Shown here piece after piece: positions 4,746-27,900 of a DNA stretch of 64,000 bases (position 1 is its first letter; the number at the start of each line of letters is the position of its first letter). The notes below the pieces were generated by a model that did not search any database, was not told where the DNA came from, and saw only the letters and a program-made list of their open reading frames with translations. The stretch covers positions 39,432,001 to 39,496,000 of the forward strand of contig NC_135660.1 in NCBI RefSeq assembly GCF_964188315.1. Reading direction: 5' to 3'. The position numbers were made by a program, and so were the translations under genes. This DNA is from Podarcis muralis (Eukaryota).

Positions 4746-6312
4746 CTCTCTATATATATAATGACAAAATCCCCCATGATATTCTTGCATATAGGTGCCT
4801 CCTTCTCACAGACAAGGTAAGCAGTTACAGCAATGGGTCCATGTGGTACCTGTCCTTCCCTGCAGGGGGAAACTCACTGTAAGAGCAACCCCTGCCATGC
4901 ATCCTGACAAGGAAGAGCAGTGTTTTCAGAATGCCTTGTAGGCAAGACAAAGAGCAGCAGAAGAGAACTGCCTGGAAAGCCAGACTTCTCACCACCACCT
5001 GTTCTTATGGGAAAGTAAACCATTGCCAGTCAGATCCTTGCTGTTGGCTTGATCAAGATGCAAGCCAGCTGGGCAGGCAATGACAAGAGAACCAGCATGC
5101 AGTTGTCTACCATTTGCTGATGGAAAATGATTGCTATGCTGGCTCTCTTGACATCACCTGCCCCATCGTTGGGAGTATTTCTCCATTTAGGGTAAACCAG
5201 CAGCAACAGCTACAACCAGGATCTGTTATTGCAAGAGCTACGTGAGATGACAGCTATGATTGATTTCCCCCTTTTGGTGACCAGGGCAGATAGTAGCAGT
5301 AATTATTCCTGGTTCAAATCCCCCACCATCACCATTGCCATTTCCAGTAGGATTCTTTTCATAAATTAAATAGCCCTTTAACACTAGGGGATCATTCACA
5401 CTTCTACTTGTGCAGTGCCTAGAAAGTATGACTTTGAGTAGTTTTCTGCTTGACCCACTCCTTTGCAAGGGAAAACTCACTCTTTAGCAACAAATCAGAA
5501 CAAATAGCAATCCGGGAAAAACCCAAATTGCCATTTGCTCTGATTGAGCGCTAAAGAGCCGTTTTCTCTAGAAAAAGCAGCAGGACAATGGAAGTGCGGA
5601 TAAGCCCTAGTTTAGAGAGGTTGGTATCTATGCAGCCTTCATAACACAAAACACAGCAATGTGAAATGAAAGTTTCTCTCTTTCTCTTTCTCTCTCTCCT
5701 CTTCAGCTCTAGAAGAATGCACATTCTAGTCCCACTGCACATATCAATGCTAAACACAGTGCAATACTATAGCAGCTACAACCTGTTGCTACAGCAAGAA
5801 GAAATATTCATGTTCCTTCAGTGTTTATATAGAGGGCAACTGCTTTTCATTCCTGGTAAGGAATACCCCAGAAGGGTGGCATCAAAAGAGTGGCTGTTTC
5901 CAGGTACCAAGGCAAGCTCCCAATTTTTCAATATTTTGGGATTCACCTGTCCATTCAAACCATAATATTTAGGCTTGTTTCCTGAACCCATGCAAAAACT
6001 GCAATCATAGATCTAAACATCCAACTAGAAATGTTTACCCACTTCAATGAGTAAAAACTGCTGGCAGAGCCTGCTCAGCATAGTGACTACATTCAGGGAG
6101 CACTGATTTCTGGCCTGCTGTATTCAAGGGCTGGGGAATCACTAGAGATTATTCAACGAGAATTCAGTGGCCAGAAGCTGACTAGAATGTTATCTAGCCT
6201 CATTCTGTTAAATGTAAGTAGCACCTAGAGCAATGGAAAATTAGGGTCAGGTAAGCTCACTTCCTGGTTTTAGAGGGCAAAACTGTCTCACTTAGGTGAC
6301 TGAAAATCTGGC

Positions 6313-9300
6313 CTATTGTAGCTGAGCCACAGCCTGCTTCAGATCTTCCACAATCAGGTCCACATCCTCCTTGCTGGTAGCACGACCCACACTGAGACGC
6401 AAGGCGTTCTGTGCCACGTCATAAGGAATTCCGCAGCTAAGCAGGATAGAGGATGGCCTGGTGAACAAAGATAAAATAAGTCAAGTTTAACCTCCTAAAA
6501 TTCCCTACAGTGGTTCCAAGAAGTGAACAGAGGAAGGAAACAAAAATTATGCAGTCCTATACTTATTTCTAAGTCTCATTAGTTTCCAATATGAGCCGCA
6601 AAGAATTCTGCCTCTGTAGTGCACATTCACATCACTGTTCTTCCTAAGAATGCTGCAGTCACCCCAGCTTAGGTGCAGATCCACTGCAGTGTTGGTTTTA
6701 AATGATAGGCAACACTTTTCTCTTGCAGGCAGACTCTGAAATATTGCCCAGGAGGGAATGTGGCTAAAAAAGATTCCCCATCTACTGGTATGTAGAGTGG
6801 TTAGAGTGTCAGATTACAACTGGGGAGCGCCTAGGTCCCAGCTCAGACATAATTAACTGACCTTGAGCTAGTGACTAGCTAACTTCCTCACAGGTTTGGT
6901 GTCAAAAGAGAGTCAAAGAACTGTGTATGCTGCTCTGAACTCATCAAAGCATGAGAAAGAAATGTAAAAAACAAACAAATAAATCTGACTTAAGCCCAAA
7001 CTAGATGCAAGACCATCTAGTGTTAGCAAGAAGAGCTGGATGGGGATCCTGGCATGGAGGTACTGTAAGGGAGCTTTGACCCTGCTGTGGCCCCCTGCCC
7101 CTATTAATCACATTGGGGGGAAATGTTTCTATCTTCTCCAGTGGAAGCTTTCCCCCCATGCATATAGCAGGCACAGGCAGCTCCATCCAGATTGGGACCA
7201 CCATGGCAGGGGAGGAGTGGTTCAGTTCTCTCCCCCAATAACAGGGTGCCAGTCCAGACTTGCCCCACATTCCTGCAGTTGTTACTTGTGTGAATGGCAT
7301 TGAATTTTGTTTGGCCCTTCATGCTTGCTATTCAGGAACCTGCTTTTGAACGTGATCCTGTGCGCATCCATGTGGAAACATGGAACTGAAATGTATTATC
7401 TCTGGAGCAGGTATGTGAGCAAAAGCCTCGATTCTAGCACATTCTGTTCTCAGATTTGGCTCCAGCATTATGTAGCTAATTAATTGGGACACAAGGCTTG
7501 TCATACCAATATGCTTATATGATTTTGCAGGTCTCAGACATAAAACTGAACCACAAGCATTCTAGGAAAATCTTTAGGTGAAAGAAATACAATACAAGGC
7601 ACTTAGGTTTCCACTGCTCTCTCCAGTATTTGAAACAAGCAGCGCACAACAGCAGGGGAGCAAGTTGCTGCTCAGACACATGATCTGTCACACTACACTG
7701 CTCTCTCTATTCAAAGGAAAACCACTTGATGATATCCTAATTCTAGGCACTTAGCTGATCACCTACTTCCCTGCCCAGCTGGAACCATCCCCTGTGAGTT
7801 CCAAAAGGGTGGGTGCCAAGGTAGAAAGGCCACAGCTTATGCAAATGTTGGCTTGTACAAAAGTGCAAAGAAAACACTTTCCACTAAGATACAAATACAT
7901 TAACCGGCTTATGAACTTAAAGCAAATTGACCAGCTTGCAAAATAAGCTCAGCTCCTCAATAAGCGGCAACAGTCTGCAACACTATCTCAGTAACCCCTA
8001 CTGCTAGCACCCTCTCCTGTGCTGCCCTTACCACCTGGCGGAAAAGTGGGACTGGCACTGTGGCAACTATACAACCCCTTCCACTTCTTAGACCTGGACC
8101 AGTAGCTCTTTAAAGCCAGGAGAAGGGTGGTTCACACAGCTAAGTGGAGGGACAGGATTAGTCTGCCCATTGTCCAGGGGCAAATGGCATGGCCTGGATG
8201 CAGGGTGAGAGATTGTGGGAGGCGGTGTCACATGTCTCTGGCAGTCTTCTCCTAAAGCAGGAGGATTTCATGTTTGAAAATGGAAAACGTTCCCTTGGTA
8301 CATCTTTGGGGGGCAGGAGAGAAGACCGTAAGATGTAAGGGCTGGCGTTACTGTCATAGGGTGGAATTCAACATTGTGCTCTTCCAATCATTCTGCCTGC
8401 ACAAGCATTTCAGCTTGCCACCATCTCCACCCACTGTTGTGGGATTCTCCTGACTCCCCTCCCCGAGCCAATTTTGGGGCACATGGTGGGAGATGGGAAA
8501 GTTACGCTGTGCAAGTACAAGTACTTGTGCAGGGCTGCTGCTGACAGGGCAGGTTGGGTGAATCCTGCTATTGTCACACACACACTAATACTACCATTAA
8601 GAAGAAGAGTTCCCTGAGAAGGTGGGTGAGTACAGGTGTTGCACCCTTTGCTTTCACTTTTCTACATCAGATGGATCTGTCCCCTCCAGCCACAGAATGC
8701 CCAGTTTCCCAACATGGTTCCTTACCGGTCACCCTTCTCGGAGTGGCATGCAGCACCAACACTGGCAAGCAAAGTCCTACAGTGAGATAGTACCAGCCGA
8801 CCTGCAGAAAATACAAGACATAGGCGTGCCATGAAATACCCAAGGACCTGGTGGAGGAAGGAACCCATAGAATCAGTTTTCAACCTCCCCTCACTCCATT
8901 CAGTGCTTATCCCACCTACACTTTTGCTAGAACTGACTTCTCACTAAAGCTGGAGGGGGGGGGGAATAAACAAATGCAAAAGTTAATGCACATCATACAT
9001 ATAAAATTGTCAAATGCAGATCTGAACAGGCAAAGTAGGGTTTTAATGACAAAAAGGTTTAATAGATAAAATCAGGATGTGGGTTTTACAATTAGAATCC
9101 CTCCTGAGATAAATATGAAATTCATGCTGAAATTATAAAAAGCCAAACTTAAAACTCATTTCCTTTTTTTACAGTGGTACCTCTAGTTACGAACTTAATT
9201 CGTTCCAGAAGTACGTTCTTAACATGAAACTGTTCTTAACCTGAGGCGTGCTTTCGCTAATGGGGCCTCCTGCTGCCGCTGCCGCGCCGCCACGCGACTT

Positions 9301-12300
9301 CCGCTCACATCCTGGGGCAAAGTTTGCTACCAGGGATATCTACAGTGGTACCTCGGGTTACAAACACTTTGGGTTACAGACTCCGCTAACCAGGAAGTAG
9401 TACCTCGGGTTAAGAACTTTGCCCCAGGATGAGAAGAGAAATTGTGTGGTGGTGGCGCAGCGGCAGCGGGAGGCCCCATTAGCTAAAGTGGTACCTCAGG
9501 TTAAGAACGGACCTTCAGAACGAATTAAGTTCATAACCAGAGGTATCACTGTACTTCCAGGTTAGCTGAGCTCATTACCCGAAGTGTTCATAAAGGGGAC
9601 GGTACGTAACCCAAGGTTCCACTGTACAGTGGTACCTCGGGTTAAGAACTTAATTCGTTCTGGAGGTCTGTTCTTAACCTGAAACTGTTCTTAACCTGAA
9701 GCACCACTTTAGCTAATGGGGCCTCCTGGTGCCGCCGCTGCATGATTTCTGTTCTCATTCTGAAGCAAAGTTCTTAACCTGAGGTACTATTTCTGGGTTA
9801 GTGGAGTCTGTAACCTGAAGTGTATGTAACCTGAAGCATATGTAATCCGAGGTGCCACTGTATTTGCAAAATTTCACAATTTGTTTGAGCAATTAGAAAA
9901 CCAATTTCCAGGACCATATTTTAGCTTCTCCCCACTCTCCCTCACACAGCAGCAGTCTGGTTTTCATCTGCTCTGAAACTATCTTAAGAGCAATGCAGTC
10001 TTGAGATCTATTGACAGGTTTAACACATATGTTGGTCACCGAGGAAGTTGTAGGCAAAAAAAACCCCAACAACACCTAAAGTAGACTGACAGCAGCCATA
10101 TAGGAATGGTGAAAATTTAGAGCCATAGGGGATACCTTTTAGTCCTGAGCCCTTGACAGAAAAGTTACAGGTGTTGCACAGTCTCCTTGAGCCTTTCAGC
10201 CTGCAGTTAAAATAAACTCCTTGCTCTTCAAACGCTGCCTAAAATGTGCAAAAATAATACTTTCAAGAAATGTTTGTTAATGATTGCCCTCACTTCACTA
10301 TCCCCCAGCTTAGCGTTCCTACAAAGGAAGGCAGCAAGAAGAAAGTGCCATGCAATTCTATCTACAAACAGGGGTCAATCCTCCCTTCCCTATGCAAAGG
10401 TTGCAGGCCAAACCAGAAAACAGGCACCCAGAGAACTCACTTCAAGTCTCTCTTCCAGGTAATCCCGGACCTTCCTCATGTGAGCTTCATAAACCTCACA
10501 GTGCCTGCTCACCAAGTCTGCTGCCTGCAAAGGAAGACAATCAGCATACCATGTTTCTCAGTGGCTACAACAAGAGACAGAACCATGAAGGGAATGGTGA
10601 TTCCCATAGAATGTCCCCATCCAGACAGATGAAAACAGATCAGGATATTCAATGCAGGACTGAAATGGGTAGGCAATCTGAATGAAATCACCTTTTGTGC
10701 CTATTCATAATGTGATTCCTTTGGTCTGACAGTGATTTGTCAGAGACCAAGGAAAGTCTACATGGCACAATTTTGCACGGGCCTCTCTCTCTAGAGCACA
10801 CCTGCAAGGTACCCACCACTCTCAATCAACTAAAAGAAAACCCATTAATCATATAACTATATACCTGTAACCTCAGTGACATAAGCTCTCTTCATATGTT
10901 TACTCACCTGATCTATCAGGCTTCTAAACTGCATTGGCAGCCTACACAGATAGTAAAGGCTCCCTGCTTTAAAACCTATTCCTCTGTGGTGCATTTTGTT
11001 TTAATACACTGTTTACTACTGGGGGGGGGGGGCATTTGGCCAAAAAGGCAATAGCAGGAGCTGGGAGGAGCTACACAACCTTGGACATGGGGCTAAAGAT
11101 GCTGACCCACAGCTCCTGGTATGTGTGTTGTCCCTTTGTGAAAGCAGCACATGAAGAGGTCTACTAGAGAAAATCTGGACATATTCTCCAACAGACCCTC
11201 AAACAGTGGCTGGGTGTTGAGTTATTGAGCACACTTTCTCCTCACCCCACCCCAGTGTATATATAGGCCAACTTGATGTACCTTTCTTGTTCTGGCATGC
11301 CATTCACATAAAGCCACAGGGAAAACTGTAAAGATTAGCTATTTGCTCTGAAAAATATGCCTAGAACAACCTTTAGTATTTCAACAAGTCCTCAGTAACC
11401 AGATCCTCACAACGATGGGAAACAACCGGAGTTTACAGTAAAGCATTTGTAAGCATCCTTGTCTCCTATCAATGTCCCACTGTGCACAGATTTAGAACTT
11501 TTGCTCCATAGGTCAAATAGCACTCCACCTCTGGCATCAGAGCGCGGGGGTGTGAGGGAAGAGAAGCACCAGCACAGATAAGCAAACCCAGGGAAATCTG
11601 TTGCACTGCTTCTGCCTTTAAATTATTGTAAGAAGAATGCTGGGTTGAAATCTGAGCCTTGCTACCAGGACAGCATCTCATGTTGAATCCATAACTGTCA
11701 TTATTAGCCCTCATCAGCTTACCTTGCCAAGGCCAGCAATCATTGGTGTATTCTCAGTCCTAGAACAGAGAAGTGCAGTGTATATTTATTCCTAAAGCAT
11801 AATAAAAGTGGCACAAGCACAGGGGCTATATCTACTTGGGTAACTAGCATAATGCAGGGACTGAAAATGGCGCTACTGTGTGATAGGAGCTACTGCTCAG
11901 TTGTGGGGGGAGGAGATCTGGTCTTTCTTGTCATCTGAATGTGACTTAGGAAGCTCAGATGCTGCCTTATACCAAGTCAGACCACTGGCCCATTGAGCAC
12001 CGTATTACTGACCAGCAGTAGCATTCCAAGGTTTCAGGCTGTGGTCTTTCCCAACCCTACCTGGAGATGTTGGGGGTTGAACCTAGAATCTTTTTGCATG
12101 TAAAGTGTGTGTGCACTAAAACTCAGCCACAGCCCATGACGTAAACCCTACACTGCATTTCCCAGCAGCTTATCCTGAAACGCTTCACACTTTGCCAAAT
12201 GAGAAACATGATATGAAAGGGAAAGGTTTTCAAAAGCTGAGCCTTTCACTCCCTAATCTATGCATCCTTGGAGTCTCAAAGAAAACTATCTTCAAAAAAA

Positions 12301-15300
12301 ACTGCTTGGTGTCTTCTCTCACAGCCCCTCACCCGCGTGAAGAAGAGGAACATGGGCTACCCACATATTGCTCCCACATCCAAGAGAGGTCCCCACCTTA
12401 CTTGGCCTCCCCCTGGATTAACTGGCTACCTCTGTGCCCTCATCCTTCTTACCCAGGGCGGAAGTTCCGTTCCTGCCCACCTCCAAACAGCATGGGATGG
12501 AGAGGAGTGGTGACACCAGGGCCTCGCACATACAGCGCTCCAATACGCGGGGCATAGAACTGCAACAATAAATCACAAAGCTAATGCCTCCAGACAAGAA
12601 CTAAGTGGTGTGTCCAACAGGAAACTGAGGTGCCTTGACCACACAGAAGTAAGGCTGACAAGAGCAGAGAAGCAAACATTAATCCTTGGGGAAATCATGT
12701 TTGCCCGTGGGAGAGAAGTATGGGTGAATCCTATGCTCACTGCTACCCCTCCCCTAGACTACCTCAGTGCTATTTCACACATAACAGAAGAGTTTCCTGT
12801 GTTTTCTCCCCCTGTTCTGTATCACTTGACAGGCATTTGTGTGCTTCAAAAAAACATGACAAACATGTTCCCAGATGCCACAGTTATTAAACTAATTACG
12901 CCTGGAGATTAACTTGAATCATTACTTGGCTACTGACAAAATAAATAAAAAAATGATAAGCTGTTTTTGAATACTGTAATGGAAAGTGACGTTGACACAC
13001 TGGACATCTCCTGCTATGGGTCATGCTCTCCTGCGCAATGTGAAAATGTGGACAAATTCACTCAACATTGTTCCCAGATTGCCATCTGGTGGAGAAGCAG
13101 TTGAGTTGCATTGCATCCTAAGAAGTGAGTTATCGACTGTCCACTATGTTTTTAGGTGTTCCAAGAGTTCATGATGAAAATAAAAGACAATTTAAACAAC
13201 ACTTTCTGCATTTCTGTGCAACCATGCTAGATGCATGGGCTGCAGAGAAGAGGGCCAAGATACTGTTCAGGGCAGAGTTTACATTGCAGTCACCATATGA
13301 CAATCTGCATGGCAGCTGTAGCAAAATACAATTGTCAGCAGCAAGCAAATCAACAATGGTTCTCATTTTAAAAAAACCCTGACGAACTGCTGCTCTAGCA
13401 CATGGATTCCCCAAAGTTAACAAAAGGCCAAAGTGAGATGGCCTCTTTGTATATTCTTTGTGTGTACATATTGTGCACTGTTTTTATGAGAGTAAGGAAA
13501 GAAGGAACAACTTTCAAATGAAAAAAAAAGTTTTGGAAATCAGGATGTAGATAGCATTAGACACATTTATTAAACAACGTAAGAAAAACACCTTTAGCCC
13601 TAATAGAGTCAGTCTGCAATCCTGCACAATGAGAACTGTGAGTGAGAGAACCAATTATGAACACCCAAACGTTTTTACTGCCAGCTTCCTGTCACACAAA
13701 GCACCTCTGGATTATGGTCACTGTCTGGTTCTCAGAATGATGGCTGGTGTTCAGGGAGCCCTGGTATGTTCTTTCTTATTTTTCTCTCTAAATATTTTAT
13801 CAACAATAAAGGATGACTCTATGGGCTGACAGCAACCCTCTGCTTAATGGGTATTGGATTTACCATGTTGGGAGATGACCTAGATGCATGGACATCTCTT
13901 ATCCTGCATGTAGAAACTACATTGTAGACCGAAGAGAGAAGCACCATACCTTGTGCCCCACAATAGTGAGGTAATCCACTCCCAGATCCTGCACGTCCAC
14001 TTGACCTTTCCCAATCATCTGGGCTGCATCTGTGTGTACCAAGATCCGTGGCAGACCAAATGCCGTTCTCTTCCGATTGAGAGCTTGAATCCGTTGGCTG
14101 AGTTCGGAGACAGGCTGATAGAAGAAAGAACCATTAGGAGGCATCATCTCACCAGGAACACAAGTGTTCTGGCTCTCTCTTTTCCTACTGCCCTACTGGC
14201 TGACATATGATGCCTTCACAGAATTACTTGCCTGGAAAGCTGGTGGTTGCCTTTGAACTTTTATTGATGGTATTCTATGGTTTTATTGTTATGTAGCACA
14301 ACTGCCCCGCCTTTGTAATTAAGGTAGAAGTTAGCATTTGGTGTAACTCAGCATCCAAACAAAGGACACCACATATAAACTCCACAGAACACACAACCCT
14401 ACACAGGGAGACCGTGGTTCACGGCATAGGGCTATGTCTCTACGTCTCCGGAGAGCAAAACCTGTAATTCCAAACTAGATTGGGGGAGCAATGAGGTGAC
14501 AAAAATTGTAGAACTAAAGGTTTTGCTATACAGTGGACCTGTGATTTACAGTGGTGCCTCGCAAGACGAAATTAATCCGTTCCACGAGTCCCTTCGTCTT
14601 GCGGTTTTTTCGTCTTGCGAAGCATGGCTATTAGCGGCTATTAACGGCTTAGCGGCTTTAAGAAAAAGGAAACAAACTCGCAAGACGTTTCGTCTTGTGA
14701 AGCAAGCCCATAGGGAAATTCGTCTTGCGGAACGACTCAAAAAACGGAAAACCCTTTCGTCTAGCGAGTTTTTCGTCTTGCGAGGCATTCGTCTTGCGGG
14801 GCACCACTGTATGTACATTTAACATGTGTGCATTCAGCTTTAGGCACTTGGCAAAAACAAAAAATTAAAAGAGGGGCAGAAAGAGGAGCGAGCATCTGGG
14901 GGGAAAACTTTGGCAATCCCACCTGGCGTTGCATCCAGTGTGTTTTGACTATACATGATTTTGGCTTTATGCACTATCCCCGGTACTTAAACCCCTGTGT
15001 AAGTTGCGGGGCTTACTGTATACCTAAAAATACATTGGTACCTCGGGTTAAGTACTTAATTCGTTCCGGAGGTCCGTTCTTTTTTTTTTTAATTTTTTAG
15101 CAAATTTTCCTTTTACAAATTAAATAAACATCTCCATATTTCCATTTCACAGATTACAGCTTTTTGACTTCCACCGGTTCCTCCCACCATCCTCATATTC
15201 ATATGTTTGTTACGCATTTTCTTTATATTATATTGCCAGTTAATAAATCCTCTCTTCTTATTTCTATTACAATACCCTTTATCATCACAAAGCCTCTTTA

Positions 15301-18300
15301 AACCCAACTAGCGTTGTCTGTTCATCACAGATGTTTTCCAGATAAGTCGTGAACTTTTTCCAGTCCTGGTTGCATTATCTTCAAATAAATGAATTGTTTA
15401 AAAAAGATTTGAAAGAAAGGGGATACATTGAAAGAGAGTCCAGATTTCAAATAGAGATAATAAATAATGATTATAAAGTATTGTCAAAAATGTATAAAAT
15501 GTTATTGGAATGGTTTACAAAGGATGAAGAGATTAAATCAGTCATGATACATTGGGCAAGAGATTTTGGTTATAATATACAGTTAGCAGACTGGGAAAAA
15601 GTATGGAATGATAATATGAAATTTACTGCATGTATGACGATAAAGGAAAACATAATGAAAATGGTATATAGATGGTATATTACCCCGGTTAAACTTGCAA
15701 AAATGTTTAAGACATGTAATAAGTGTTGGAAATGCAAAGAAAAGGAGGGGTCTCTCTTTCATATGTGGTGGGAATGTAAGAAGGTGAAGGGCTTTTGGGA
15801 AATGATTTACAATGAGCTGAAAAAGATGCTCAAATATACATTTGTAAAGAAACCAGAAGCTTTTCTGTTAGGAATTACAGGAAGAGAAATTAACAGAAGT
15901 GACTTTAAACTTTTCCAATATGCAGTGATTGCGGCAAGAATTTTAATGGCCCAAAAATGGAAACAAGAGGACTTACCGACAGTGGAAGAGTGGAGAATGA
16001 AACTTATGGATTTTGCAGAGTTAGATAAAATGACTGGGAAAATCAGATATAAGAAAGACCACAAGTTCATTGAGGACTGGACTGGACCGGAGGTCCGTTC
16101 TTAACCTGAAACTGTTCTTAACCTGAAGCACCACTTTAGCTAATGGGGCCTTCTGCCGCCGCGCAGCCAGAGCATGATTTCGGTTCTCATCCTGAAGCAA
16201 AGTTCTTAACCCGGGGTACTATTTCTGGGCTAGCAGAGTCTGTAACCTGAAGTGTATGTAACCTGAGGTACCACTGTACTGAGATTGAAAGTCGGTGAAA
16301 TGAAAGGAGAGTGGAAATATTTTGGGGGAGCATCAGCTCCCTCTCATTGGCTCTTGGGATCATCTGACCACATATATGAACCTCATATTCTTAAACATGT
16401 AATAAGAAGGCACAACTCACCATGATAACCCCAGTTTCATTATTGGCCAGCATAATGGAAACTAGACATGTAGTTGGACGGATTGCTGCAACAACTTCAT
16501 CTACTTCCACCTGTCCTGTCACTTTGGACACGGGTACAAAAGTGGCTTCTGTAAATCAGGATGCAATAAAAGATGTTGATCCCATAGCTCAATGCATTCA
16601 TCAGCACTTACTATGTATCTGGCAGCAGTGGAGAAAGTCACAGGGAATAGCAGACCTATTGCTAGGCAACAGACAAGCGCTCCTTAGTCTTGAAAGATTA
16701 AGATATGGCTGTCATAAGGGAATTTGGGAGGAAGTGGCTATTGACTTAGAAGCAGCATTTAATGAAAGAGGCAGCTGAGCAAAAATGGATTTTCCTGGAG
16801 CTCAGCTAGATACTTGGAAGATAAGAGAGGAGGAAGCTGAGGGGAAATGCTGCATGCTGTTTAAGTCTCTTCAGTTTGCAAAAGGCCCCACTAAGAGCTC
16901 TGAGTCTCATACTGAGTTCTGCCATGATCCTGCCCAATTGGAGAAGCACCGTTAAACCTAAACCTAGCACCGTTTGAACACAAGCTATATATTCCTCCCT
17001 CCCTACGCAGTGATAAGAGCACTTATCAGCCAGGTTAGGAATGCCATCTCTGACTCCATGTGTTGGTTACTTTTTGACAGGCAAGAAGGATAGGATAGGA
17101 TAGGATAGGATAGGATAGGATACCATAGGAAAGGATAGGATAGGATAGGATACCATAGGAAAGGATAGGAAAGGGAAAAGGAAATGATGCAAATAAATGC
17201 ATTTGAATTAAAGGTTCAGAACTGCCCCCAATTCTGGACATTAGCACCACAGTGAAAGTACTGCTGAGCCAGCTTTAGACAGCTCACATTCGGAGTAACC
17301 AATAAAGAGACAGTATACCATACAAAACCCCTTCATGGATCACTGCCTTGTTGTGGTGAAGGGACTTGAATAACTTCAAGAAGCTCTGAGCTATGCTGTG
17401 CAGGGCCACCCAAGACAGACAGGTCATAGCCGAGAGTTTAGACTAAATGTGATCCACCTGCAAAGGAACTGGCAATCCACTCCAGTATTTTGCCAAGAAA
17501 ACTCCATGGACATAAAAATGGAGAAGCTTTGAGAAGAAAGTGAGAGTTTCCAAGGCATGCTCTGGTTCATGGGGTCACAGAGAGTTGAACACGACTAAGA
17601 CGACTAAACAGCAATACCAAAAAAGTAGTATTTGCTACTCAGAAACTAAAATTGCTAAAAAAAGAGCTTTTGCCTAAGCAGAATCTGGCAAGTGTGTATA
17701 ATTTTATCAGCAATCTCTGACTATCCACTACAGTATACTCACCAGCCTCATGCTCTTTCACTAGGTGCTCCACAGGGAGACGGACTGAGTCATGCTCAAT
17801 GCAAGATGTAATTAAATGTGGACACAGCCCCAGAGTCTTTTGTTTATCTTCTCTTGGTCCATCAGAACTTTGCTTGTTGCTTTCCTTAAAATGCTTCACT
17901 GCAGTGTGGATCACTAAATTGTTTGCCTGAATGGAAAAAGGAGGGATACAAATCCCCATCTCATAAGTTCATATGAATATCCAGATTTACCAGTGCAGTC
18001 CTCTGGAGTAGACAATGCTGAATTTCTTACCCAAAAACTAGTTCAGTGGCAGACTTGTCTTTCAGTCTCAGAAGGATCAGAGGCAGAGGACTGATTTGTA
18101 GTCATTACCTCCATGTGAGTGAATCAAATTGCAATACATGCTCCTTTGCAGGTTTTAAATAAAAGATAGAGCCATTCAACAGAAGAGGGATAGACTTTCT
18201 TTTTATCTGATGGGTGTTTGCTGGGTCTTACTTGGCACTAATTAAGAATGGAGTCACCAATGCTATGAGAAGCAAATAAAGTCAGACTCCATTTAGGGGG

Positions 18301-19664
18301 GAAAGAGAGCTAGCATGTTATGGGTTGATCTCTTAAATGACTACCAGGTCAAAACAGTGCTAGCAGAATCTCATATCTCACCTCTGTCCCACCAGAAGTG
18401 AAGACGATGTCCTGGGGTCGTCCCCCTACCATTCTAGCCAGACTTTCACGGGCTCCATCTATAATATTTTTAGCCCTTCGACCTGTGAAATCAAAGGCAC
18501 ATTTATCTTATTATCAAGGCAAGGTGTGTGGGGTGTGTCTCTCCAAAGGGTGGCATTAGGGGAAAACTACCACCTTGAGTTCCAGGATGTAATAAAGTGA
18601 TAAATAAACAAATTATTAAGTCCACCCAAATTCTGGAAGAGTTTAATTGTTTTGATACAGAATAATTATTTCTGGTAACAATAAGTGCCAGATTTGGCTC
18701 TGTGTTCCTTGCATGAGCATTTATTTCAGTGAGTGCTAGAGACTGGATCACATGTAGTAATACATTCCTTTAAGGCCATTTCAATGCAGTAACTTGAATT
18801 TAAAAAGGCAAGACAAATATAAAAATGAGATGGATGCTTTCATAGAATGTTTCCATCCAGGCTTGCTCTCACCTTCTGCGTAAGAGCTGCTCGGATTGCC
18901 CCATGCTTCATGCATGGCTTCTGTAACTGTCTCAATCACCTCTGGAGCCAGAGGGGTGGTTGCATTGTAATCTAGATATATCTTCCTGAAGGGAACAGAA
19001 TGCAAGAATAGTTACAACAGAAAAAGGAATTAAGATACATTACCTCTAGCACTCTTTTGGCCAAAGTTGCATCATTGGTTATGAAAAATGCTGCCCTAAC
19101 CAAACCACTCCTAAAGTCGTCATTGCCACAACCACAAAGATGATACTGGGGTTTTGAAATAAAACATCACTATCTCTCCCCAAGCTTTTAAATGTGGTGC
19201 CAGTTTTGATGAATACATCATATGACACACTCACATAAATGTGACAAAGTGGGCCCAGGCCCATGAAAGCATATGCCACAATGCATTTGCTAATCTTTAA
19301 AGTGATTTTGCTGAAAATCACAGCATTCTAGCACTTAAGAAGTTGACTACTGTAATGATCTTTCAGTTCCTAGAGCTCAATCCTAAGATTTTTTTACTTG
19401 CTTGGAGTTTTGCAATCCAATCTACACACATTTACTTGGAAGTAAGTTCCACTTAATTCAACAGGACTCATTCCCAAGGTATATTGTGGGTAAAATAGCA
19501 AAATCTCAGCACTTACCATTGTCAAAACATTGTCTCCATTTTTTAAAGTCAAGGGAAGCTACAAACCTGTTTGATGAGTTGTTCTCTTCCCCATCAAAGC
19601 CAATTTTCTCTCTGTTCTCATTTCCTTTGTTCACTAATACTTTCTTCATTTGCTTCTCTTCCAT
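6313..19664 (-). CDS. SCLY: Selenocysteine lyase, 12 coding exons: 19664-19567, 18985-18873, 18482-18382, 17926-17743, 16548-16421, 14114-13950, 12559-12453, 11759-11723, 10524-10441, 10238-10136, 8801-8726, 6457-6313
   Basis: All exons have GT-AG borders and join in frame. Translation includes [33 protein letters not shown] (EHD as in SCLY, not the EHK of NFS1), [20 protein letters not shown] (PLP lysine), [21 protein letters not shown] (catalytic Cys) and ALRLSVGR, ending in TAG. The first coding exon (MEEKQMKK...NNSSNR) is the least certain and was chosen for its phase-2 donor. Confidence 0.97.
9172..9860. mobile_element. Stack of three Tc1/pogo MITEs: A 9172-9624 containing B 9343-9551, then C 9627-9860
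   Basis: Three pairs of cagtggtacc TIRs, each flanked by TA. Confidence 0.85.
13169..13400 (-). mobile_element. Possible decayed RTE-clade RT fragment
   Basis: [10 protein letters not shown]...FSAA resembles the ELLFADDCAL...FSAAC segment of RTE reverse transcriptases. Similarity is short. Confidence 0.35.
14549..14809. mobile_element. Tc1/pogo MITE, second family
   Basis: TIRs cagtggtgcctcgcaagacg...cgtcttgcggggcaccactg with TA flanks. Confidence 0.88.
15033..16276. mobile_element. Tc1/pogo MITE interrupted by an L1 insertion
   Basis: Left arm 15033-15081 and right arm 16087-16276 rejoin into the same MITE family as 1058-1299. Confidence 0.85.
15082..16086 (-). mobile_element. 5'-truncated, 5'-inverted L1-clade LINE
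   Basis: 16-bp TSD ccggaggtccgttctt at 15066-15081 and 16087-16102. Poly(A) and the ORF2 end ([26 protein letters not shown]) read on minus, 15082-15367. The upstream ORF2 part ([24 protein letters not shown]) reads on plus, about 15368-16080. Confidence 0.88.
17086..17170. repeat. (GATAG)n microsatellite
   Basis: Direct pentamer repeats with interruptions. Confidence 0.95.
17322..17615 (+). mobile_element. BovB/RTE-related non-autonomous element
   Basis: gatcactgccttgttgtggtgaagggacttg head, ccactccagtattttgccaagaaaactccatgga, and ggggtcacagagagttgaacacgactaa tail. Confidence 0.7.
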
Positions 19665-21370
19665 TCTCCACTAACCTATTTTAAGAAAAACACAACCCAC
19701 TATGTTTCATGAAACATTAGACTTCAAATTGCACACAAATAAATTCTGACATGCCTTTGCACATTAATCAAAAAGACACGACTACTCGTTCTGCTGTATC
19801 TTCAGGAATCAGAGGCACTGACTTGCGCCCCAGATTGGAGGGGCCCAGCATTGCACGCAAGCGCAACGTGACATCATGACATCACACATGTGAAACCAAT
19901 GGGTACGCAATGAAGCCCAACACCACTGCCCCCTGCTTGCAACTGCAGCCCTGAACGCCACCACCCATGCACCACCTTACCTCCACTGGCTCTCCACAGC
20001 CACTGCAGCAGCTAGGCCAAGGTCTCTGCCGCAAGGCCTCCAGTGGAGGTTAGGCGGCAGGCAGCGGCAGTTTGAGGTGGTCCAGCTGCATTTGTAGGCA
20101 GGGTGGTGGTGGTGGGAGGAGCCCAAGGACTAGACACACATCATTGGGAGGCTTCCTCCACCCCCTCAACATTGGGGGGGGGGGCTTGGCCTGCCTACAA
20201 ATATTGAGGGGGTCCAATCCTATAGAGATGGCACCAGTGTCAGGAATATTGAATTACCATTCTGTAGAGGTACCTCCAAAGATGGACATAAGAAAGTTAG
20301 AAGAAATACTTCCCATCATATTCCCTGTCTACCTAGGATTGATATACTATCTTCCCTGGTTTCCAGCTGGGAGGCAGTCAAAGGAAGAGTCACACACATT
20401 GTCAAAAGATTTGTATATGGGAGATATGTTTTAGGGCTGACAGTGGCTCTCCAGAATTCCCCCCCCCCAATCCTACCTGGAAATGCCAAAGACTGAAAGT
20501 GAATCTGGACCTTTTGCATGCAAAGCATGTGCTTTACACTACCAAGCTACAACTCTTCCTCAAAGGTGAATTGCCTAATGTTCCCAAGGAAGCTCATAGT
20601 AGAGGGGAAATTATTATCATTATTTATTAAATTTCTATTCCACCCTTCATCCAGAGATCACAGGGTGGTTGACAATATAAAAACACAAAAATACATACCA
20701 TAATAGCAAACAAAAACAATACTCCCCACAGTTTAAAAAGCCATAGAAAGCCAAAAATTCTAAATTGTAGTTCAATCTGCAGTGATGGTAGTTATTCTGT
20801 TATAATTTTCACCTGTTCCCACATTTTCTCTCATAGGCTCAATGCACAGGCACTGTTTATGAGCAAAGAGCTTCAGACACTTCCAACACATAACCAGAAT
20901 AAAATTTTGTTGTGTAGCTTATCACTCAACAACAGAGGGTTGTTGAGTGGAATGGGAGAGCTTCACACTATATGAAAGACCCTTAGATGGCTTGCAGTCC
21001 TATCCACAGTTGTTATCATTCCTCTCCGTTTTGTAATTATCATTGCTTTGTTTTTGCACTGAAACCCCGCCCTTTCCATTAAGACTTTAGCACAACCTTC
21101 TAATCCCAATGCCCTATTGTAATTAACCCTAAATACATGTACCTGAAATAACTGCTTATCTAAGCCTTGTCTCTGCTTCCCTCCCGTTTCTGTCATTGCC
21201 TATTTCTGGATTGTGAACCCCTTGGGGCAGGGACCTAGCAGCTCCTTCTTGTTTTGTTGCAAAGCCTCATGAACATGGATGGCACCATACTAACATTAAT
21301 ACAAGAAAACAATTTATATGAGTCACCAAGTTGGTTCCTTTTATTTTATTTACAGGGAGATGTTTCTTAC

Positions 21371-22900
21371 TGCTGAAATTGTGCTAAACAAAATGGGGAA
21401 CTGTTCTCTCAGCTCTTGCCCACAAGACATAAAGTGAACCTCCCTTTGGACTAGGGAGCGTATATCTTAATAGAGACAAAGAAAAGAGACGACTACTCCC
21501 GCCCCACGGGTGAGAGATGCCTATCCAATAACAGCTGAAAACAGAATGCTCGACTGCACAACCTTCCGCCTCAACGCGACCATTTTTATACAAACTTCGA
21601 GGCGCACCTATTGGCTACTACGGCATAATTTCAGCTACGAACCAATCCGCGTCCTCCAACTCACCACGTAGCTATTGGCTGCTGAGGCTGCTTAACACTC
21701 CAGCCACCGACAAATCAGTTCCGCGCCACACAATTCGGACTGACAGTGGCAAGGCGGGTTGACGCGTAGTTAGACGCAGGAGCCGGGGCATCCGTTGACT
21801 CTCTCTTCCCACTCTCACTATCATTAGTAATATGACGACAGTCTCCCGAAAGAGGGCATTGGTCTATGGTCGAGTCTGGTACTGGTGTGGCTTCAGCTTC
21901 CGCCCAAGAAAGGCTATTAGTTTAATCGCGACCAGGCGGGTCGACTCCTCAAGGACCAATCAGCTTCCTCCTCCGCCAGTGCGTAATGGCGCTCAGCAAG
22001 GCACGGCTGCGTTAGTTAACCAATCGGTTGCCTCGCATTGACGATAACCTGCCTCCGACCTTCCCCTTAAGAAGCAAGACCCCTTCGTCCATTTGCCTTG
22101 GCTTCGCTTTACTGATTCTGCTCACCTGACGGTAGTTGGCGACTGGGTCTTTTTTTTTTTTTTGCCGTCGTCGTTACTTGTTCGACCTATTTTTTCCCCA
22201 CAAGGAGGCCTCACAGGCCCGGTTTTCGCCTCAGCTGCAGAAACGGGACCATATATTAGCTACCAACGCCCAGTTTATTTTTTCAAAGCAACTCGGTGAA
22301 TGACAGTTGAGATCATAGAGACGTCGGCATGAGAGACCACCACAGGGGAAGGGTTGCTCGCGCTGCCCTTCCTCAAGATGGCGGCGGCGGCGGCATCGCT
22401 TTCCCTTTTCCCGCTGCGTAGGGCTCGCTCGCTCGCTCTCACTTACCAAGATGGCGAAGGATGGGCCGCGGGCTTTTAATTGACGCTTTACCTCTTCTGG
22501 CTGGTTCTGCTGATCGAAGGCAGGTCTTGGGGATAACGGGAGAGGCGGGATTAGAGCCGGCCAGGCCGGGCTATTCAACGGTTGGCCGGCCGGGCAGGGG
22601 AAACGGCGCCTGGGCCTCAGGCGGCTTCGGCCTGGGAGTGGGGAGGAACTTGCCGGGGCTGAGAGGGAGGGAGGCCGGGCCCCACCCCCATCCGCCTCAT
22701 GGCGCCTGTGGCGGCTTTCGCCTCACTGGCGTTATTTTCCAGGCAGGAATAAGGGCTGGCAACTGCCTGTACGTGGAGTGCCTGGTCCCTGCCTTGCAGA
22801 CGGGCAGTGGGGTGCGCAGGTGTTCTCTGGTGCTCTTGACAGCCTCGTGGTTTGAGGCGGTACAGGGTTGGTCCGCTTGACAGGTTTTAGAAAGATCCCT
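21371..22900. promoter_or_regulatory. CpG-island bidirectional promoter shared by SCLY (minus) and the transposase-like gene (plus)
   Basis: High CpG density. Several CCAAT/ATTGG boxes between about 21520 and 22030. Minus-strand TATAAAAA at 21583-21590 and a minus-strand donor (gtaaga) at 21370. YY1-type CAAGATGGCG motifs near 22375 and 22447 on plus. Confidence 0.8.
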
Positions 22901-24117
22901 TCCTTCTCGGTGGGCTGTTTTAATCCCCCCTGTTGACCTCCAGAACGTGATCCCCGGACGCTATGCTCTCAAGCCTCTTTGGTTTAGTGCACTACCTGCG
23001 CTCATAGTTTCCAGGACCTAGAGTGGACTTTCATAAATCCCGTGATTGCATCTCCTTAAAAATCCAAGTTTTGAGCCCTTCAGTTGAGAATTTGCTTACA
23101 GTTTGAAAATAGGAAATTGCCTGAATGCTAAAACTTGGAAGCATCATTGTATATATGTTGACAGGTGCTATTTGTATTTATTTGCCTGTTTCCATTCTGG
23201 GATTCGGGTTTCCTTTAGAAAATACTGTTCCATTTCAGATTGCAACACTATGCACATCTGGGAGGAAAAGCTGTAGTCAACTCACTGGGACTTGCTTGTG
23301 AATATATATGCATGAGGTTGCACTGACAGGAAGATTAATGTAGTTATACCAGGGCACTTACTGCAGCAGGCAGCTTTGAAAAAGCAAGATTGAGGAAAAG
23401 GTACAGCTACTTGGAACTGTTGCAGTGCAATCTGTTAAAGGCTACCTGTGTGATGGGAGAGCAGGCTCGAAATGTTGTAAATAAATATTTTTAAAGATTT
23501 GAAGGTAACTTGGCCACCACAGATTTCTGAGTTATAATGGACAAAATACAAGTATTAAGACTGCTTGTCGAGGTGATTTGTGGTTAATCGGAGAAACACC
23601 TGTGCCATTGCTAGAAGGCTTTTTGTGAATTCCCTAATAGGGTTTAATAGATGGTATCTAATGTTAATCGTGCTCAAAGGAGACCCACTGAAATCAACGG
23701 ACAAGTACTCTGGGTCTACCTTGTATGATATTGCACTATATTTTTAAATATTAAAATATAAGAACATATTGAATTATATATGAATGATTTAGCTGTGCCA
23801 ATGACAGATCATGTGGGAAATTCAGACTGCAGCTAACATGAATAAAATACTTTATTGATGCTTTACTGCTCGACAAGTCAGTTTTGTTTTTCAGATAGGA
23901 GCTTACTTAGTCCAAATGGGTGGAACTAAGTAATGCTCTCTCCAGAAATTACTTGATTGTTTATGTTGGCTGCAGTCCTGAACACTTTGACCACCTTGAC
24001 TTACATATTCTTAGCTTCACATAATTAAGTTTTTCTTTTAATTCTTGTTGCTACTCTATTTCAACTGTCTAATATCTCTTTATTTCAGCTTTTGGTATAA
24101 AGAGACACTGGAAAGGA

Positions 24118-24996
24118 ATGATGGCGGCTTTGGATACTAAAGCAAAAGCAAAAAAAACTCTGGGAACAGTTGATTATGTGGAGTCATCAGAATTTGCACA
24201 AGGAATTCTGCCTACCAAGAAGGATGTCATTCAAAACATGCTATATCTATTGCACCCGAAAAGGGCTGGGCAAGCCCAGCGATCCAAAGAAGATGCTGCC
24301 CAGTTGCTTGCTGAACTTCTGCAGGAGCACTGGTTGTTTTGCAATTTGTATACCATAGCAACACAAAGCATAAAGAAGCATATTCTTAAGGTGTATGAGG
24401 AATTTTCAAAATTATATCAGTCCAGAAAGCGGAGAAAAAATGAGTTGTTTACACAGAAAGCAGATGATTTCAACAGGAGTTCAGAGCAGCTTTTTGACAT
24501 ATTTTGTACAGACACAGGAACAAGAGAGAAATTGGAGCAATACAGTGGTGTGAAGATGACTGACATTGAGTGGAAATTTCTTGAAGATCAGAGGAGTGAA
24601 AGAAAAATGTACTTTGAGGACTTCGTGGACAAGAAACAAATGGAAACAATAGAAAGACGAAGAAAAGTAGAATCACTGGAGCATTTCAGGAAGATTGCAG
24701 AAGAAGAGAAAGATGCATGTAAGCGTAAAGGAATGACTTCCAATAGAGATGAGCAGCCAGTTGAAGATGTCAGCAGTAGGAAGAAAGATGACCCCTGCCT
24801 TGGACGCAGCAAAGGAATTGGGAACTTTTCACATAAGGCAAAAAGAAAGCGCCTATCTTCTGGCTGGATTACTGGGACAGCATCTTCAACTAGCTATAGC
24901 GAGTCAGTTGCACCTGAATGTCAACATATACGTATGAGCATCAGAAAAGTCAGACCAGGGTTCTATGAGACTTTTGACAAATATGAAAACTGCTAG
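24118..24996 (+). CDS. Intact 292-aa ORF resembling the N-terminal region of hATm-like (Cc8K15.2-like) DNA transposases; candidate domesticated gene
   Basis: No stops or frameshifts. Preceded by a good acceptor (tctctttatttcag, exon starts 24089) and a strong Kozak context (GGAATGATGGCGG). Motifs LPTKKDVI, WLFCNLYTI, LFDIFCTD, GVKMT, FLEDQRSERKM and RKVRPGFY match my recollection of this family. Basic NLS-like patches RKRRK and KAKRKR. No DDE core and no TIRs seen. Confidence 0.7.
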   Translation: MMAALDTKAKAKKTLGTVDYVESSEFAQGILPTKKDVIQNMLYLLHPKRAGQAQRSKEDAAQLLAELLQEHWLFCNLYTIATQSIKKHILKVYEEFSKLYQSRKRRKNELFTQKADDFNRSSEQLFDIFCTDTGTREKLEQYSGVKMTDIEWKFLEDQRSERKMYFEDFVDKKQMETIERRRKVESLEHFRKIAEEEKDACKRKGMTSNRDEQPVEDVSSRKKDDPCLGRSKGIGNFSHKAKRKRLSSGWITGTASSTSYSESVAPECQHIRMSIRKVRPGFYETFDKYENC

Positions 24997-27900
24997 CCCA
25001 ACATTCAAAATCTGTTTCTGTTGAAGTTTTGGGAGGTCTTAATACCCTGACTAATTGGAAGTTGATGTAGATAATTTTGTTGGGCTCCATTAATGTACAG
25101 CAACACCACCAAAGCAATGGCACCAGTAGAAATGGGCTTTTAGCTTACTGAGAAAGTAAGATTTGTTTAGGCCTGCACTGATACTTTCACAAGGTGAAAG
25201 TACTGTGTACTAAAAAGCTATAGTGTAGCAAAGGAAGACAGAAAAACCAATGTTTGGATGTTAAAGCAAACCAAATGCACAATAGTAGGTTATGTTATAT
25301 AATAACAATTTAACCACTGGAACAGACTTCTTAGGAAGGTGGTGCATTCTCCATTTCATACAGTCTTCATGTTGGGCTGGACACTCCTAAAAAAACATTT
25401 TGCTGAAATGTTGTATAGTGGCCTGAAATAGAAGTGTGAGGAGAAAATGCAGACTCTCCTGTAGGAGAGTCATATTATATAACCTGTTGCCCATTCCAAC
25501 CTCAGTGTCTCCCAAGACTGGAAGACCATGTACAATTAAAATAAAAAATGGTAACTAGTGAGATGGCAGCTAAAAGGGGAACATGGTTATGGGGCTGTGT
25601 GTCACAATGCAGGATCTTTTTGAGACTCAATAGACTGCTAACTTCCTGCCTGTTAAAACGAGTAAGCACACCTGAAGGGAAAACAGTAATTGGCTCAAAT
25701 ATCTAAAAAGTACAGTAGTTTCCTGTAATGCCCACCCCCATACCTTGATAATACTTGTATGGTCTTAAGAGACTGACCATATACAATTTGCCATTACTTC
25801 ATTGAGACTTGAAGGGGTTCTGCGCCTTTCAGGACTAGGTGTTTACAGGCGAAAGAAAATAGGCTTCCTCTGTTTGATCTTGCAGATATTTAGTTCCTAA
25901 AATACCTATACAGTTCTGAAAAGCAGCTTTTGATAGATAGCATTGGCTCATGTGAGAAGGGGGGGGAAAGAGTCAGGAAATTTAAAAAATGGCTTTTGGT
26001 ATAAATGTGGTGGTAACAACTTTGTATATTTTCTGCATTCTTAGCAATTAAATATCAGTGGTGAGAAATATATGTGGAAAAGTTGAATTTGTAATTGAAA
26101 ATATTTGAGACATAAACATGTATAATGCACTGAACATAGCATGGGCTTGGAACTGCCTTACAAATTATTTTAAAGGTGTTTAATTCTTTTCATTAAGTAA
26201 GGATTGCAAATGAATGCACTGTAATGTTTGCTACAGTGGAAGGACGTAGCTGCACTGCAGTTATAATGTCCACTGAAACAGAAGCAAGTCCTTCCATCTT
26301 GAGAAATTTGTAGCTCTGCCTGCAGTGAGCATTGGTAGTACAGATTGCAGCCCTTTCAAAGCTAGGCAAAACTTCTGTTTTCATACATCACTGTTTTTTT
26401 TCCAGCATACAGATGGCTAGTTTTCACAGTCTCAGATCCAGACATATTGTATGCATGATGGTCTGTGCATGTACTGTTACATTACATGACCTCTGGATCA
26501 CATGGTGTATACACAGACATCCACATGTGGAATTTCTTTATTCTTATCTCTGGAAAGTCACAAACACCCGGCAACACACCCATACACATGTTTCCCATCA
26601 TGTTGGGAAGAGTATATTCCTCAGTACACTGCCCCATTGGCTGTATAGTAGTTACATCCTAGAAATCATGGGGTATTGGGAATGGTTTACAAATATATGT
26701 ACATCACTTGATCTATCACCACCTAATGGTTCTTTGCTGAAGATGTGAACTGTGCACCATAATGCTGTGTGTTGGTATTAACGTTGGGCGATATAACTGG
26801 CCTGTTAAAGTTAGCATAATATTTTAAATTTTGTTCACATAATTTCCATAAATACAAGTACTTCAAAATATTAAATGGTTACTTTTAGGCAAAGGGCACC
26901 TGTCTAGCCCCAAATCCTAATAACAAATTGCCATCGTTTTGTTACCCTTTGCCAGAAATGGTTTTATTTCATCTGTTGCCTTTTTTCATATGGACCAAAA
27001 ATGTAACTTTATGCAGCATTATATGCATGTTGTGTCAAGCTAAGGAACAATGATTTATTACTACATCTGCCCTTGCTTATACATTTGATTTTCCATATGA
27101 GAAGTAGCCCCGCTCTAAAACCATGTCAAAAAGGCTGACTGGAGAGACGATTAATCCAATTAATTGTAATGTAATTGGGTGATGTGCATTATGTCAGTAA
27201 TACAAGCAGTTTTACTGGATCTTTGAAGCAATAAAAGCACCCTCTTTTTTCGGGAAAACAAGTGAGCCATCACTAATGGTAGTGACTGCTTCCATTAAAA
27301 TTTGTCTCCTTTAAAGTTTTTAGATGGATATTTCCAAATGTTTGCATTCAATAGTCATAGTTAATTTTGAAGTTGTTTCCATTCCCAGTCAAGATAAGCT
27401 AACCAAATGCCTAAAATTATCATCCCTCATTCGTCCTAATATTAAATGCCTCCCCAAATTGCAATATATTTTCTGCACAGGCAAATTTTGAACCTTCGAA
27501 TGGAGGAAATTGTCAGAATGAGATTCAGTCACTCTGAGTTTAATGTTTTAGGGATCAAAAATCTTTTTTGTTTCCTGGAAGGGATAATTCAAATGATATA
27601 TGTTCTGTAGCATACATACAAATGCCTCGCTCCATACATTGCAAAAAAGCAGCTAATTTTTCTTTTTCCATGTGTTCGTATTGATTGGTTAGGTTCATTT
27701 AAAACTCAAAGTAATGAATATATGATTTAGTAGTAAGTGTGTGATTATCGCATTACTGCTGAATTAATCCTACTTTTTTTTAAAAAAAGTATGAATAATC
27801 AGGCCCAGTGCTAAAGGTTTCTGGAATTTGTTGATGGCAGGCCTGCCAAAAGATCATGTTGAATTTCTTGATAGACTGGTCATGTTCAAAAGAAGCAGCA

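Follow-up and report, generated by a model that had tools for sequence, protein, structure and literature searches.

Does the long open reading frame next to the SCLY gene of the lizard Podarcis muralis belong to a host gene and, if so, from which transposase was it derived and what has been kept of it? The frame lies in a 64,000-nucleotide stretch of contig NC_135660.1 (assembly GCF_964188315.1, positions 39,432,001 to 39,496,000, forward strand; hereafter, the window), and had been marked in an initial annotation, made from the letters alone, as a candidate domesticated transposase gene. The best overall explanation, to which we assign a probability of roughly 0.85, is that the front third of a hAT-superfamily transposase has been domesticated as a two-exon sauropsid gene; that it encodes a nuclear DNA- or chromatin-associated factor is a less certain part of this reading. 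That the locus is a conserved, constrained, and expressed host gene derived from the part of such a transposase preceding its catalytic core (the pre-core part) appears highly probable. The gene is annotated at NCBI solely as 'uncharacterized LOC...', with no known domain and no published function.

The frame (24118–24996, plus strand) encodes 292 residues without interruption and is the longest of the window, as the initial annotation held, the runner-up having 251 residues. Its start region reads ATGATGG in the window and GTGATGG in turtles, alligator, and birds in the genome alignment; because the latter removes the first ATG, the initiator common to all of them is the second ATG (24121), flanked by A at −3 and G at +4. 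A TTTCAG splice acceptor ends at 24088, 29 nt 5′ of the first ATG, at exactly the distance first described; it is kept at the equivalent position in all seven aligned sauropsid genomes, squamate transcript assemblies use it, and one short bird contig lends support. Every motif quoted earlier is present in the given order: LPT..DV (residues 31–37), EHWLFCNLYT (70–79), LFDIFC (125–130), GVKMT (144–148), FLEDQRSERKM (154–164), and HIR..RKVRP.FY (within 266–292). The basic patches that had been likened to nuclear localisation signals are found as RKRRK (103–107), RRRK (180–183), and KAKRKR (240–245) in a protein with an overall isoelectric point of 9.15. The (K/R)RKR patch is retained in the sauropsid proteins and in the transposases, and the KAKRKR patch is a candidate nuclear localisation signal.

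A word-indexed search of ~5.8 billion proteins returned orthologues of 274–316 residues with 59–92% identity from lizards, snakes, turtles, crocodilians, and many birds, the closest being that of Sceloporus (92%). Their labels all read 'uncharacterized protein LOC...', with a single snake entry named after chicken LOC424740, and a literature search found no publication on LOC424740 or on a sauropsid hAT domestication. The order SCLY (minus strand) followed by the gene (plus strand) holds in the window and in all seven other sauropsid genomes checked (Sceloporus, Anolis, Gopherus, Alligator, Struthio, Cyrtonyx, and Accipiter), where the neighbours were recognised in the flanks as an Aminotran_5 gene (SCLY) and a gene with HSR and PHD domains (AIRE). 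In the three birds (Struthio, Cyrtonyx, and Accipiter), for which the fetched flank reached far enough, AIRE (plus strand) follows the gene. The single-copy syntenic orthologue beside SCLY that the initial annotation had suggested looking for is accordingly present in lizards, turtle, alligator, and birds, and the ratio of nonsynonymous to synonymous substitution rates (dN/dS), for which it had named a value near 1 as counter-evidence, is 0.07–0.2 over the whole protein in pairwise comparisons (Nei–Gojobori), showing purifying selection. By region, the ratio is 0.03–0.17 for residues 1–200, 0.2–0.7 for the linker (201–262), and again 0.03–0.17 for residues 263–292. In an unrooted maximum-likelihood tree of 12 sauropsid proteins, 39 element proteins, and two outgroup proteins, the sauropsid sequences form one clade with short branches and a support of 100/100, and the topology within the clade is that of the species tree (squamates, then turtles, then alligator plus birds).

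Weaker matches to the host protein (35–51% identity) came from a starfish, a mantis shrimp, amphioxus, and a bivalve, as well as from numerous contigs of marine metagenomes; these proteins continue beyond the sauropsid stop into ...DDGSKKQG...TDQTSHN...CNVHP.... An exhaustive HMMER search gave 456 matches, most of them to fragments, as a repeat family would yield. By searching with the downstream part, many proteins of 925–945 residues were retrieved on contigs of 3–5 kb (limpet, amphioxus, octopus, clams, and toadfish), and the host protein is colinear with residues 1–287 of proteins of this size from molluscs, amphioxus, a crustacean, a fish, and marine metagenomes. Three elements of 3.5–4.8 kb, each with one transposase of ~930 residues, are bounded by inverted termini TAGGGGGTGGTGTTA or close variants; these termini, also given for the parent family as TAGGGGGTGG, begin with TAGGG and conform to the pattern (C/T)A(G/A)NG of hAT inverted repeats in all three (L008, L009, and L010). 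The L008 copy is embedded in a long (TATAC)n microsatellite (L008:5194–5646 and 9148–9418) and its flanks match over 7 or 12 nt; since the host site is itself this microsatellite, the target-site duplication is unreadable. On the short metagenome contigs L009 and L010, no clear target-site duplication is seen. Copies of the family are plentiful in data from marine invertebrates and metagenomes.

The superfamily of the parent was identified from its structure. No match above threshold was obtained when Pfam was scanned with the host protein, with ten partial and ten long relatives, and with 29 full-length transposases; none of the 29 had any Pfam match, with PF05699 absent even at E values up to 1, and a profile of the full-length proteins found nothing among PDB sequences. 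The AlphaFold2 model of the full-length protein P0211, with a mean predicted local distance difference test score (pLDDT) of 83, superposes over residues 310–775 on residues 135–609 of the Hermes transposase (Z-score, 16.2; 339 residues; root-mean-square deviation, 3.4; VIA-align), the next class of matches being retroviral integrase cores at a Z-score of ~10. The best 12 Foldseek matches of P0211 in the PDB are all Hermes, with P element, RAG1, and Transib far behind, and the top 30 Swiss-Prot models are nearly all known hAT proteins (ZMYM1, FAM200A/B/C, ZBED4/5/6, GTF2IRD2, KIAA1586, RICESLEEPER, and Ac). In addition, none of the 29 proteins departs from D364, D433, E739, C460, H463, and W524, residues that are probably equivalent to those of Hermes, so that the D, D, E triad, a CxxH after the second D, and the insertion-domain W characteristic of hAT transposases are all found. 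The Hermes-like model and the invariant residues, together with the lack of Pfam and PDB sequence matches, indicate a hAT-superfamily transposon that is unseen by sequence models. A MULE parentage had been considered because of a few MULE/SWIM labels among arthropod fold matches, and was dropped once the full-length model matched Hermes.

The initial annotation had called the transposase hATm-like. Its placement in the hAT superfamily stood, through the Hermes fold and the elements bearing terminal inverted repeats; the subgroup label is consistent with the termini but unproven, PF05699 being absent. The hATm group has termini 5′-TAGGGTG...CACCCTA-3′ and target duplications of 8–9 bp, and insect hATm-6 has PF05699 in proteins of 624–730 residues (PMC6004678). 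Compared with this published description, the parent termini TAGGGGGTG...CACCCCCCCTA follow the hATm pattern with extra G/C residues; written as TAGGGGGTGGTG...CACCCCCCCTA, they resemble those of hATm, and the spread across invertebrates is similar. Unlike hATm-6, no protein found here is matched by PF05699. The proteins P0129 and P0152 (742 and 724 residues), which are near insect hATm-6 in size, represent a second element-like family on arthropod-like contigs; they share only the first ~160 residues with the ~930-residue family, and their downstream part, with motifs such as DGRKD, DGT..MTG, C.LH, and VERH, cannot be aligned with it. Since the N-terminal domain also heads these proteins, it behaves as a module common to transposon lineages.

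The host protein aligns from residue 1 to residues 286–287 of P0211, and its first 165 residues are 64% identical (105/163). In the P0211 model, the Hermes-like part begins at ~275–310, and D364 is the first catalytic aspartate, which means that the host gene stops just before the core. It was foreseen that only the non-catalytic part of the transposase had been kept, and the host protein indeed corresponds to residues 1–287 of a ~930-residue protein from which the core is gone. Nor does the window contain terminal inverted repeats or a core, again as first reported: tblastn with the core found no remnant over its whole length, and the parent terminus motif gave three matches with three mismatches each, which is the level expected by chance; the window contains a single copy of the gene. 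Without the RNase-H-like DDE core, the host protein is unable to cut or join DNA.

Evidence for transcription and splicing came from RNA contigs of a bird and a squamate. Ten contigs from public runs encode one bird orthologue; eight of them retain intron sequence up to TTTCAG, and contig L022 starts right at the exon 2 boundary and is uninformative on splicing. In bird contig L030, 27 nt ending in ...CCAAGATGGCG are fused to the first base past the acceptor; the same 27 nt are found ~470 nt upstream in genomic contig L027, where they are followed by GTGAGC. This one short contig end is consistent with precise removal of a GT–AG intron at the predicted acceptor. In a squamate, six contigs from one project and at least six runs encode an orthologue with 87% identity, and each carries, 373 nt off and on the opposite strand, an unbroken 439-residue SCLY frame. 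Placed on the window, these contigs cover 12 SCLY exon blocks, then 22339–22468, and then 24087 to at least 26095; from this block pattern, they are spliced RNAs of SCLY and of the present gene that were merged by the assembler. The ~160 nt of the squamate contigs between the SCLY start codon and exon 1 do not align to the window. Their head-to-head fusion points to transcripts whose 5′ ends overlap one another inside a shared CpG island. Such an island had been proposed as the host promoter; the island itself is confirmed by composition, with a GC content of 0.45–0.63 (at least 0.54 in its core) and a CpG observed/expected ratio of 0.6–1.04 vs. 0–0.35 in the flanks. An alligator contig (Logan, L006) is colinear with the genome and gives no information on splicing.

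Exon 1 is non-coding and contains two AAGATGGCG boxes on the gene strand (22375–22383 and 22448–22456), which presumably resemble YY1 sites. The pair, with a spacing of ~70 nt, recurs from lizards to birds (also in L001, L002, L003, L004, L007, L011, and L027), except in the alligator, for which a single exact box was found (L005). In birds and turtle, the second box abuts the splice donor (GCG/GTGAG), and the squamate donor is shifted downstream relative to these. The initial annotation had pointed to a junction from an exon near 22400–22520 into 24089: the spliced contigs do run from 22339–22468 to 24087, and a donor at 22518/22519 (CAG/GTCTTG) is a plausible candidate in the window, but Sceloporus and Anolis do not share it, and the alignment of the exon 1 regions does not pin the donor of the window. 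An upstream ATG within the first box opens a short reading frame (22378–22479, plus strand), whose peptide is alike in three lizards (MAA.AS...FPLR) and not in turtles or birds; it is hence more likely that the conservation is that of the DNA box.

We conclude that a hAT-superfamily transposon was inserted between SCLY and AIRE, once, before the split of lizards, turtles, crocodiles, and birds, and that, of the ~930 codons of its transposase gene, the initial ~287 were retained and the remainder lost. Transcription proceeds from the probable CpG-island promoter shared head-to-head with SCLY, with the short exon 1 being spliced to the exon that carries the entire frame. Three parts of the transposase have been kept, namely a helical domain of ~165 residues, a long charged helix with a basic patch, and a 27-residue pre-core block. 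The part of a hAT transposase that precedes its core is the one that recognises transposon ends, and nuclear DNA or chromatin binding through the N-terminal domain is therefore the likeliest mode of action; on the present analysis, we put at about even odds that the host protein works in this way. Self-association or partner binding may be served by the long helix and the C-terminal block, and the protein would act as a regulator at host sites. It is possible, although doubtful, that the ~165-residue module is an undescribed DNA-binding fold that takes over end recognition from the BED finger in at least one hAT lineage, and that it was made into a sequence-specific nuclear regulator by sauropsids. 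If so, a new fold expressed from the SCLY promoter just upstream of AIRE would have host targets, possibly including its neighbours, with no mammalian counterpart.

Several observations weigh against the preferred explanation and its DNA-binding part. The AlphaFold2 model of the host protein is of moderate quality (mean pLDDT, 61) and poor after residue 205; it is good for residues 10–160 only, where a beta-hairpin is followed by six helices (pLDDT 79–93 over residues 10–130), and the remainder consists of a long helix (172–207) and disordered sequence save a short helix near the C-terminus. The N-terminal domain matches no Pfam family, and no solved structure resembles it: Foldseek of the host model against the PDB gave nothing below E = 1, and the best hit of a wide VIA search (Z-score, 5.2) covers a single long helix only, so that the domain resembles no known DNA-binding fold. 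The BED zinc finger is the usual end-binding module of hAT transposases; none was detected by Pfam in host or parent proteins, and there is no Cx2C ahead of the conserved H71/C75. Finally, no orthologue was found in mammals, amphibians, or fish, but the databases searched list called proteins only. Among AlphaFold DB clusters and in the ESM Atlas, the only fold neighbours are unnamed arthropod element-like proteins, and the language-model neighbours are SAP/HeH-type families with scores below 0.7, a weak lead toward DNA binding. An ElaD/SseL-like Pfam match (E value, 0.022; 15 bits vs. a cut-off of 27) was discarded as noise, and huntingtin, the sole PDB match of the N-terminal profile, involves a charged low-complexity linker and was treated as compositional.

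The absence of structural likeness to known DNA-binding folds bears on what the retained part does. Rather than binding DNA, it might be a protein-interaction or oligomerisation adaptor that, for example, recruits a host factor once needed by the transposase. The missing likeness would suit this role, the long charged helix and the constrained C-terminal block resemble interaction surfaces, and the Hermes region just ahead of the core is generally known to help multimerisation. We nevertheless regard a pure adaptor as unlikely, because the position of the domain favours end recognition, which some part of the ~930-residue transposase must perform, and because the protein is basic with conserved basic patches and has, as weaker evidence, the SAP/HeH-type neighbours. 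A trans-dominant repressor of the parent family, similar to KP and binding transposon ends or poisoning transposase multimers, would have just this architecture of an N-terminal transposase fragment without the core, and with a domain 64% identical to present-day element proteins the recognition of related ends is conceivable. However, the strong constraint in every sampled sauropsid lineage has lasted far longer than a DNA-transposon family is usually active in one lineage, the window is devoid of an element-like copy or terminus, and no full-length sauropsid copies of the family were returned by searches that were not designed for decayed copies, all of which make a repressor improbable.

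As for the origin of the gene, the direction of transfer is not formally shown by an unrooted tree, and an old host gene could have given its domain to transposons by capture. This seems highly improbable, as the host protein is colinear with the entire pre-core part, including the linker, the basic patch, and the pre-core block, and stops before the core; element proteins of many phyla carry the module, as does the second element family, and the short host form is found in sauropsids only. That the frame is a decaying or recent transposon fragment, open by chance, would be in keeping with its lack of a Pfam domain and its annotation as merely 'uncharacterized', but is refuted by the synteny in eight species, a dN/dS of ~0.1, the conserved positions of the stop and the intron acceptor, the conserved promoter exon, and the spliced transcripts.

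With domestication of a transposase front part as the preferred reading, the gene can be placed among known systems. KP of the Drosophila P element, a transposase cut short to its N-terminal part, is the product of a live element and acts on it; both KP and the present protein lack a catalytic domain, whereas the gene described here became fixed in its hosts long ago, is present in one copy, and has a promoter exon of its own. With Hermes and other hAT transposases (PDB entry IDs, 6dwz, 4d1q, and 2bw3), the parent protein shares the catalytic fold and the helical insertion domain. The host gene, in contrast, keeps no core, and the N-terminal ~200 residues of the parent have neither a BED finger nor a match among solved structures. 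The parent also has ~150 extra C-terminal residues past the match with Hermes; PF05699 is blind to its C-terminal region and goes undetected, yet the structural match runs to Hermes residue 609. The ZBED family, ZMYM, FAM200, GTF2IRD2, and KIAA1586 belong to the same superfamily and are the best structural neighbours of the parent core, but they retain most or all of the transposase body, of which the present gene has only the front part. The amniote CGG-binding protein CGGBP1, the closest known case in kind, is a domesticated hAT fragment (PMC11575156) that carries a BED-type zinc finger and occurs in mammals (PMC11575156; cited therein, Yellan et al. 2021, PMC8097297). Both proteins are small and amniote-conserved, consist of hAT transposase sequence from ahead of the catalytic domain, and combine a structured N-terminus with a loose tail in the absence of the DDE core. 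Judged by the description of CGGBP1, the gene found here is set apart by having no BED or other Pfam domain, by coming from another hAT lineage, and by having been found in sauropsids only.

Vertebrates have repeatedly gained regulators by domesticating transposases. To our knowledge, nearly all documented hAT domestications have been recognised by a BED finger or a hAT dimerisation domain; as the present gene has neither, it escapes domain-based surveys, and despite this invisibility it is intact and strongly constrained in every sampled reptile and bird lineage. It offers a handle on an uncharacterised N-terminal transposase module with a wide distribution among invertebrate elements, and the conserved SCLY–AIRE neighbourhood of sauropsids gains an unstudied protein that is probably nuclear.

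The features of the locus and the parent elements are collected in Table 1.

Table 1. Coordinates of the gene, its neighbour, and the parent elements (window positions unless a contig is named)
Feature	Position	Strand	Basis
SCLY (selenocysteine lyase), 12 coding-exon blocks	6194–19649	−	Spliced 439-residue Aminotran_5 frame of L031 and L032; independent exon mapping agrees
CpG island, probable bidirectional promoter between SCLY (−) and the hAT-derived gene (+)	~21250–23000		Composition
Non-coding exon 1, minimum extent by homology	22339–22468	+	Squamate RNA contigs L031, L032, L036
Splice acceptor TTTCAG of the single intron	24083–24088	+	7/7 sauropsid genomes; bird contig; squamate contigs resume at 24087–24089
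5′ untranslated leader in exon 2	24089–24117	+	Acceptor position; RNA contigs
Complete coding sequence, 292 residues plus stop; conserved initiator at 24121	24118–24996	+	Open reading frame; orthologue alignment
Conserved N-terminal domain, residues 1–165, transposase-inherited	24118–24612	+	Identity to P0211; dN/dS; pLDDT
Long charged helix, residues 166–210	24613–24747	+	AlphaFold2 helix 172–207; generic coiled-coil-like matches only
Fast-evolving disordered linker with basic patch KAKRKR (24835–24852)	24748–24912	+	pLDDT ~30; dN/dS 0.2–0.7
Conserved C-terminal block, residues 266–292, last pre-core stretch of the transposase	24913–24993	+	dN/dS 0.03–0.17; P0211 alignment reaches residue 286
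3′ untranslated region, minimum extent	24997–26095	+	Squamate RNA contigs align at 24087–25557 and 25911–26095
Elements with TAGGGGGTGGTGTTA-type termini	L008:5647–9147; L009:13–4782; L010:61–4453		Inverted termini

The remaining open reading frames of more than 180 residues in the window, at 15349–16104 (plus strand), 47854–48492 (minus strand), and 57090–57719 (plus strand), have no Pfam match, and the one at 15349–16104 sits within an intron of SCLY.

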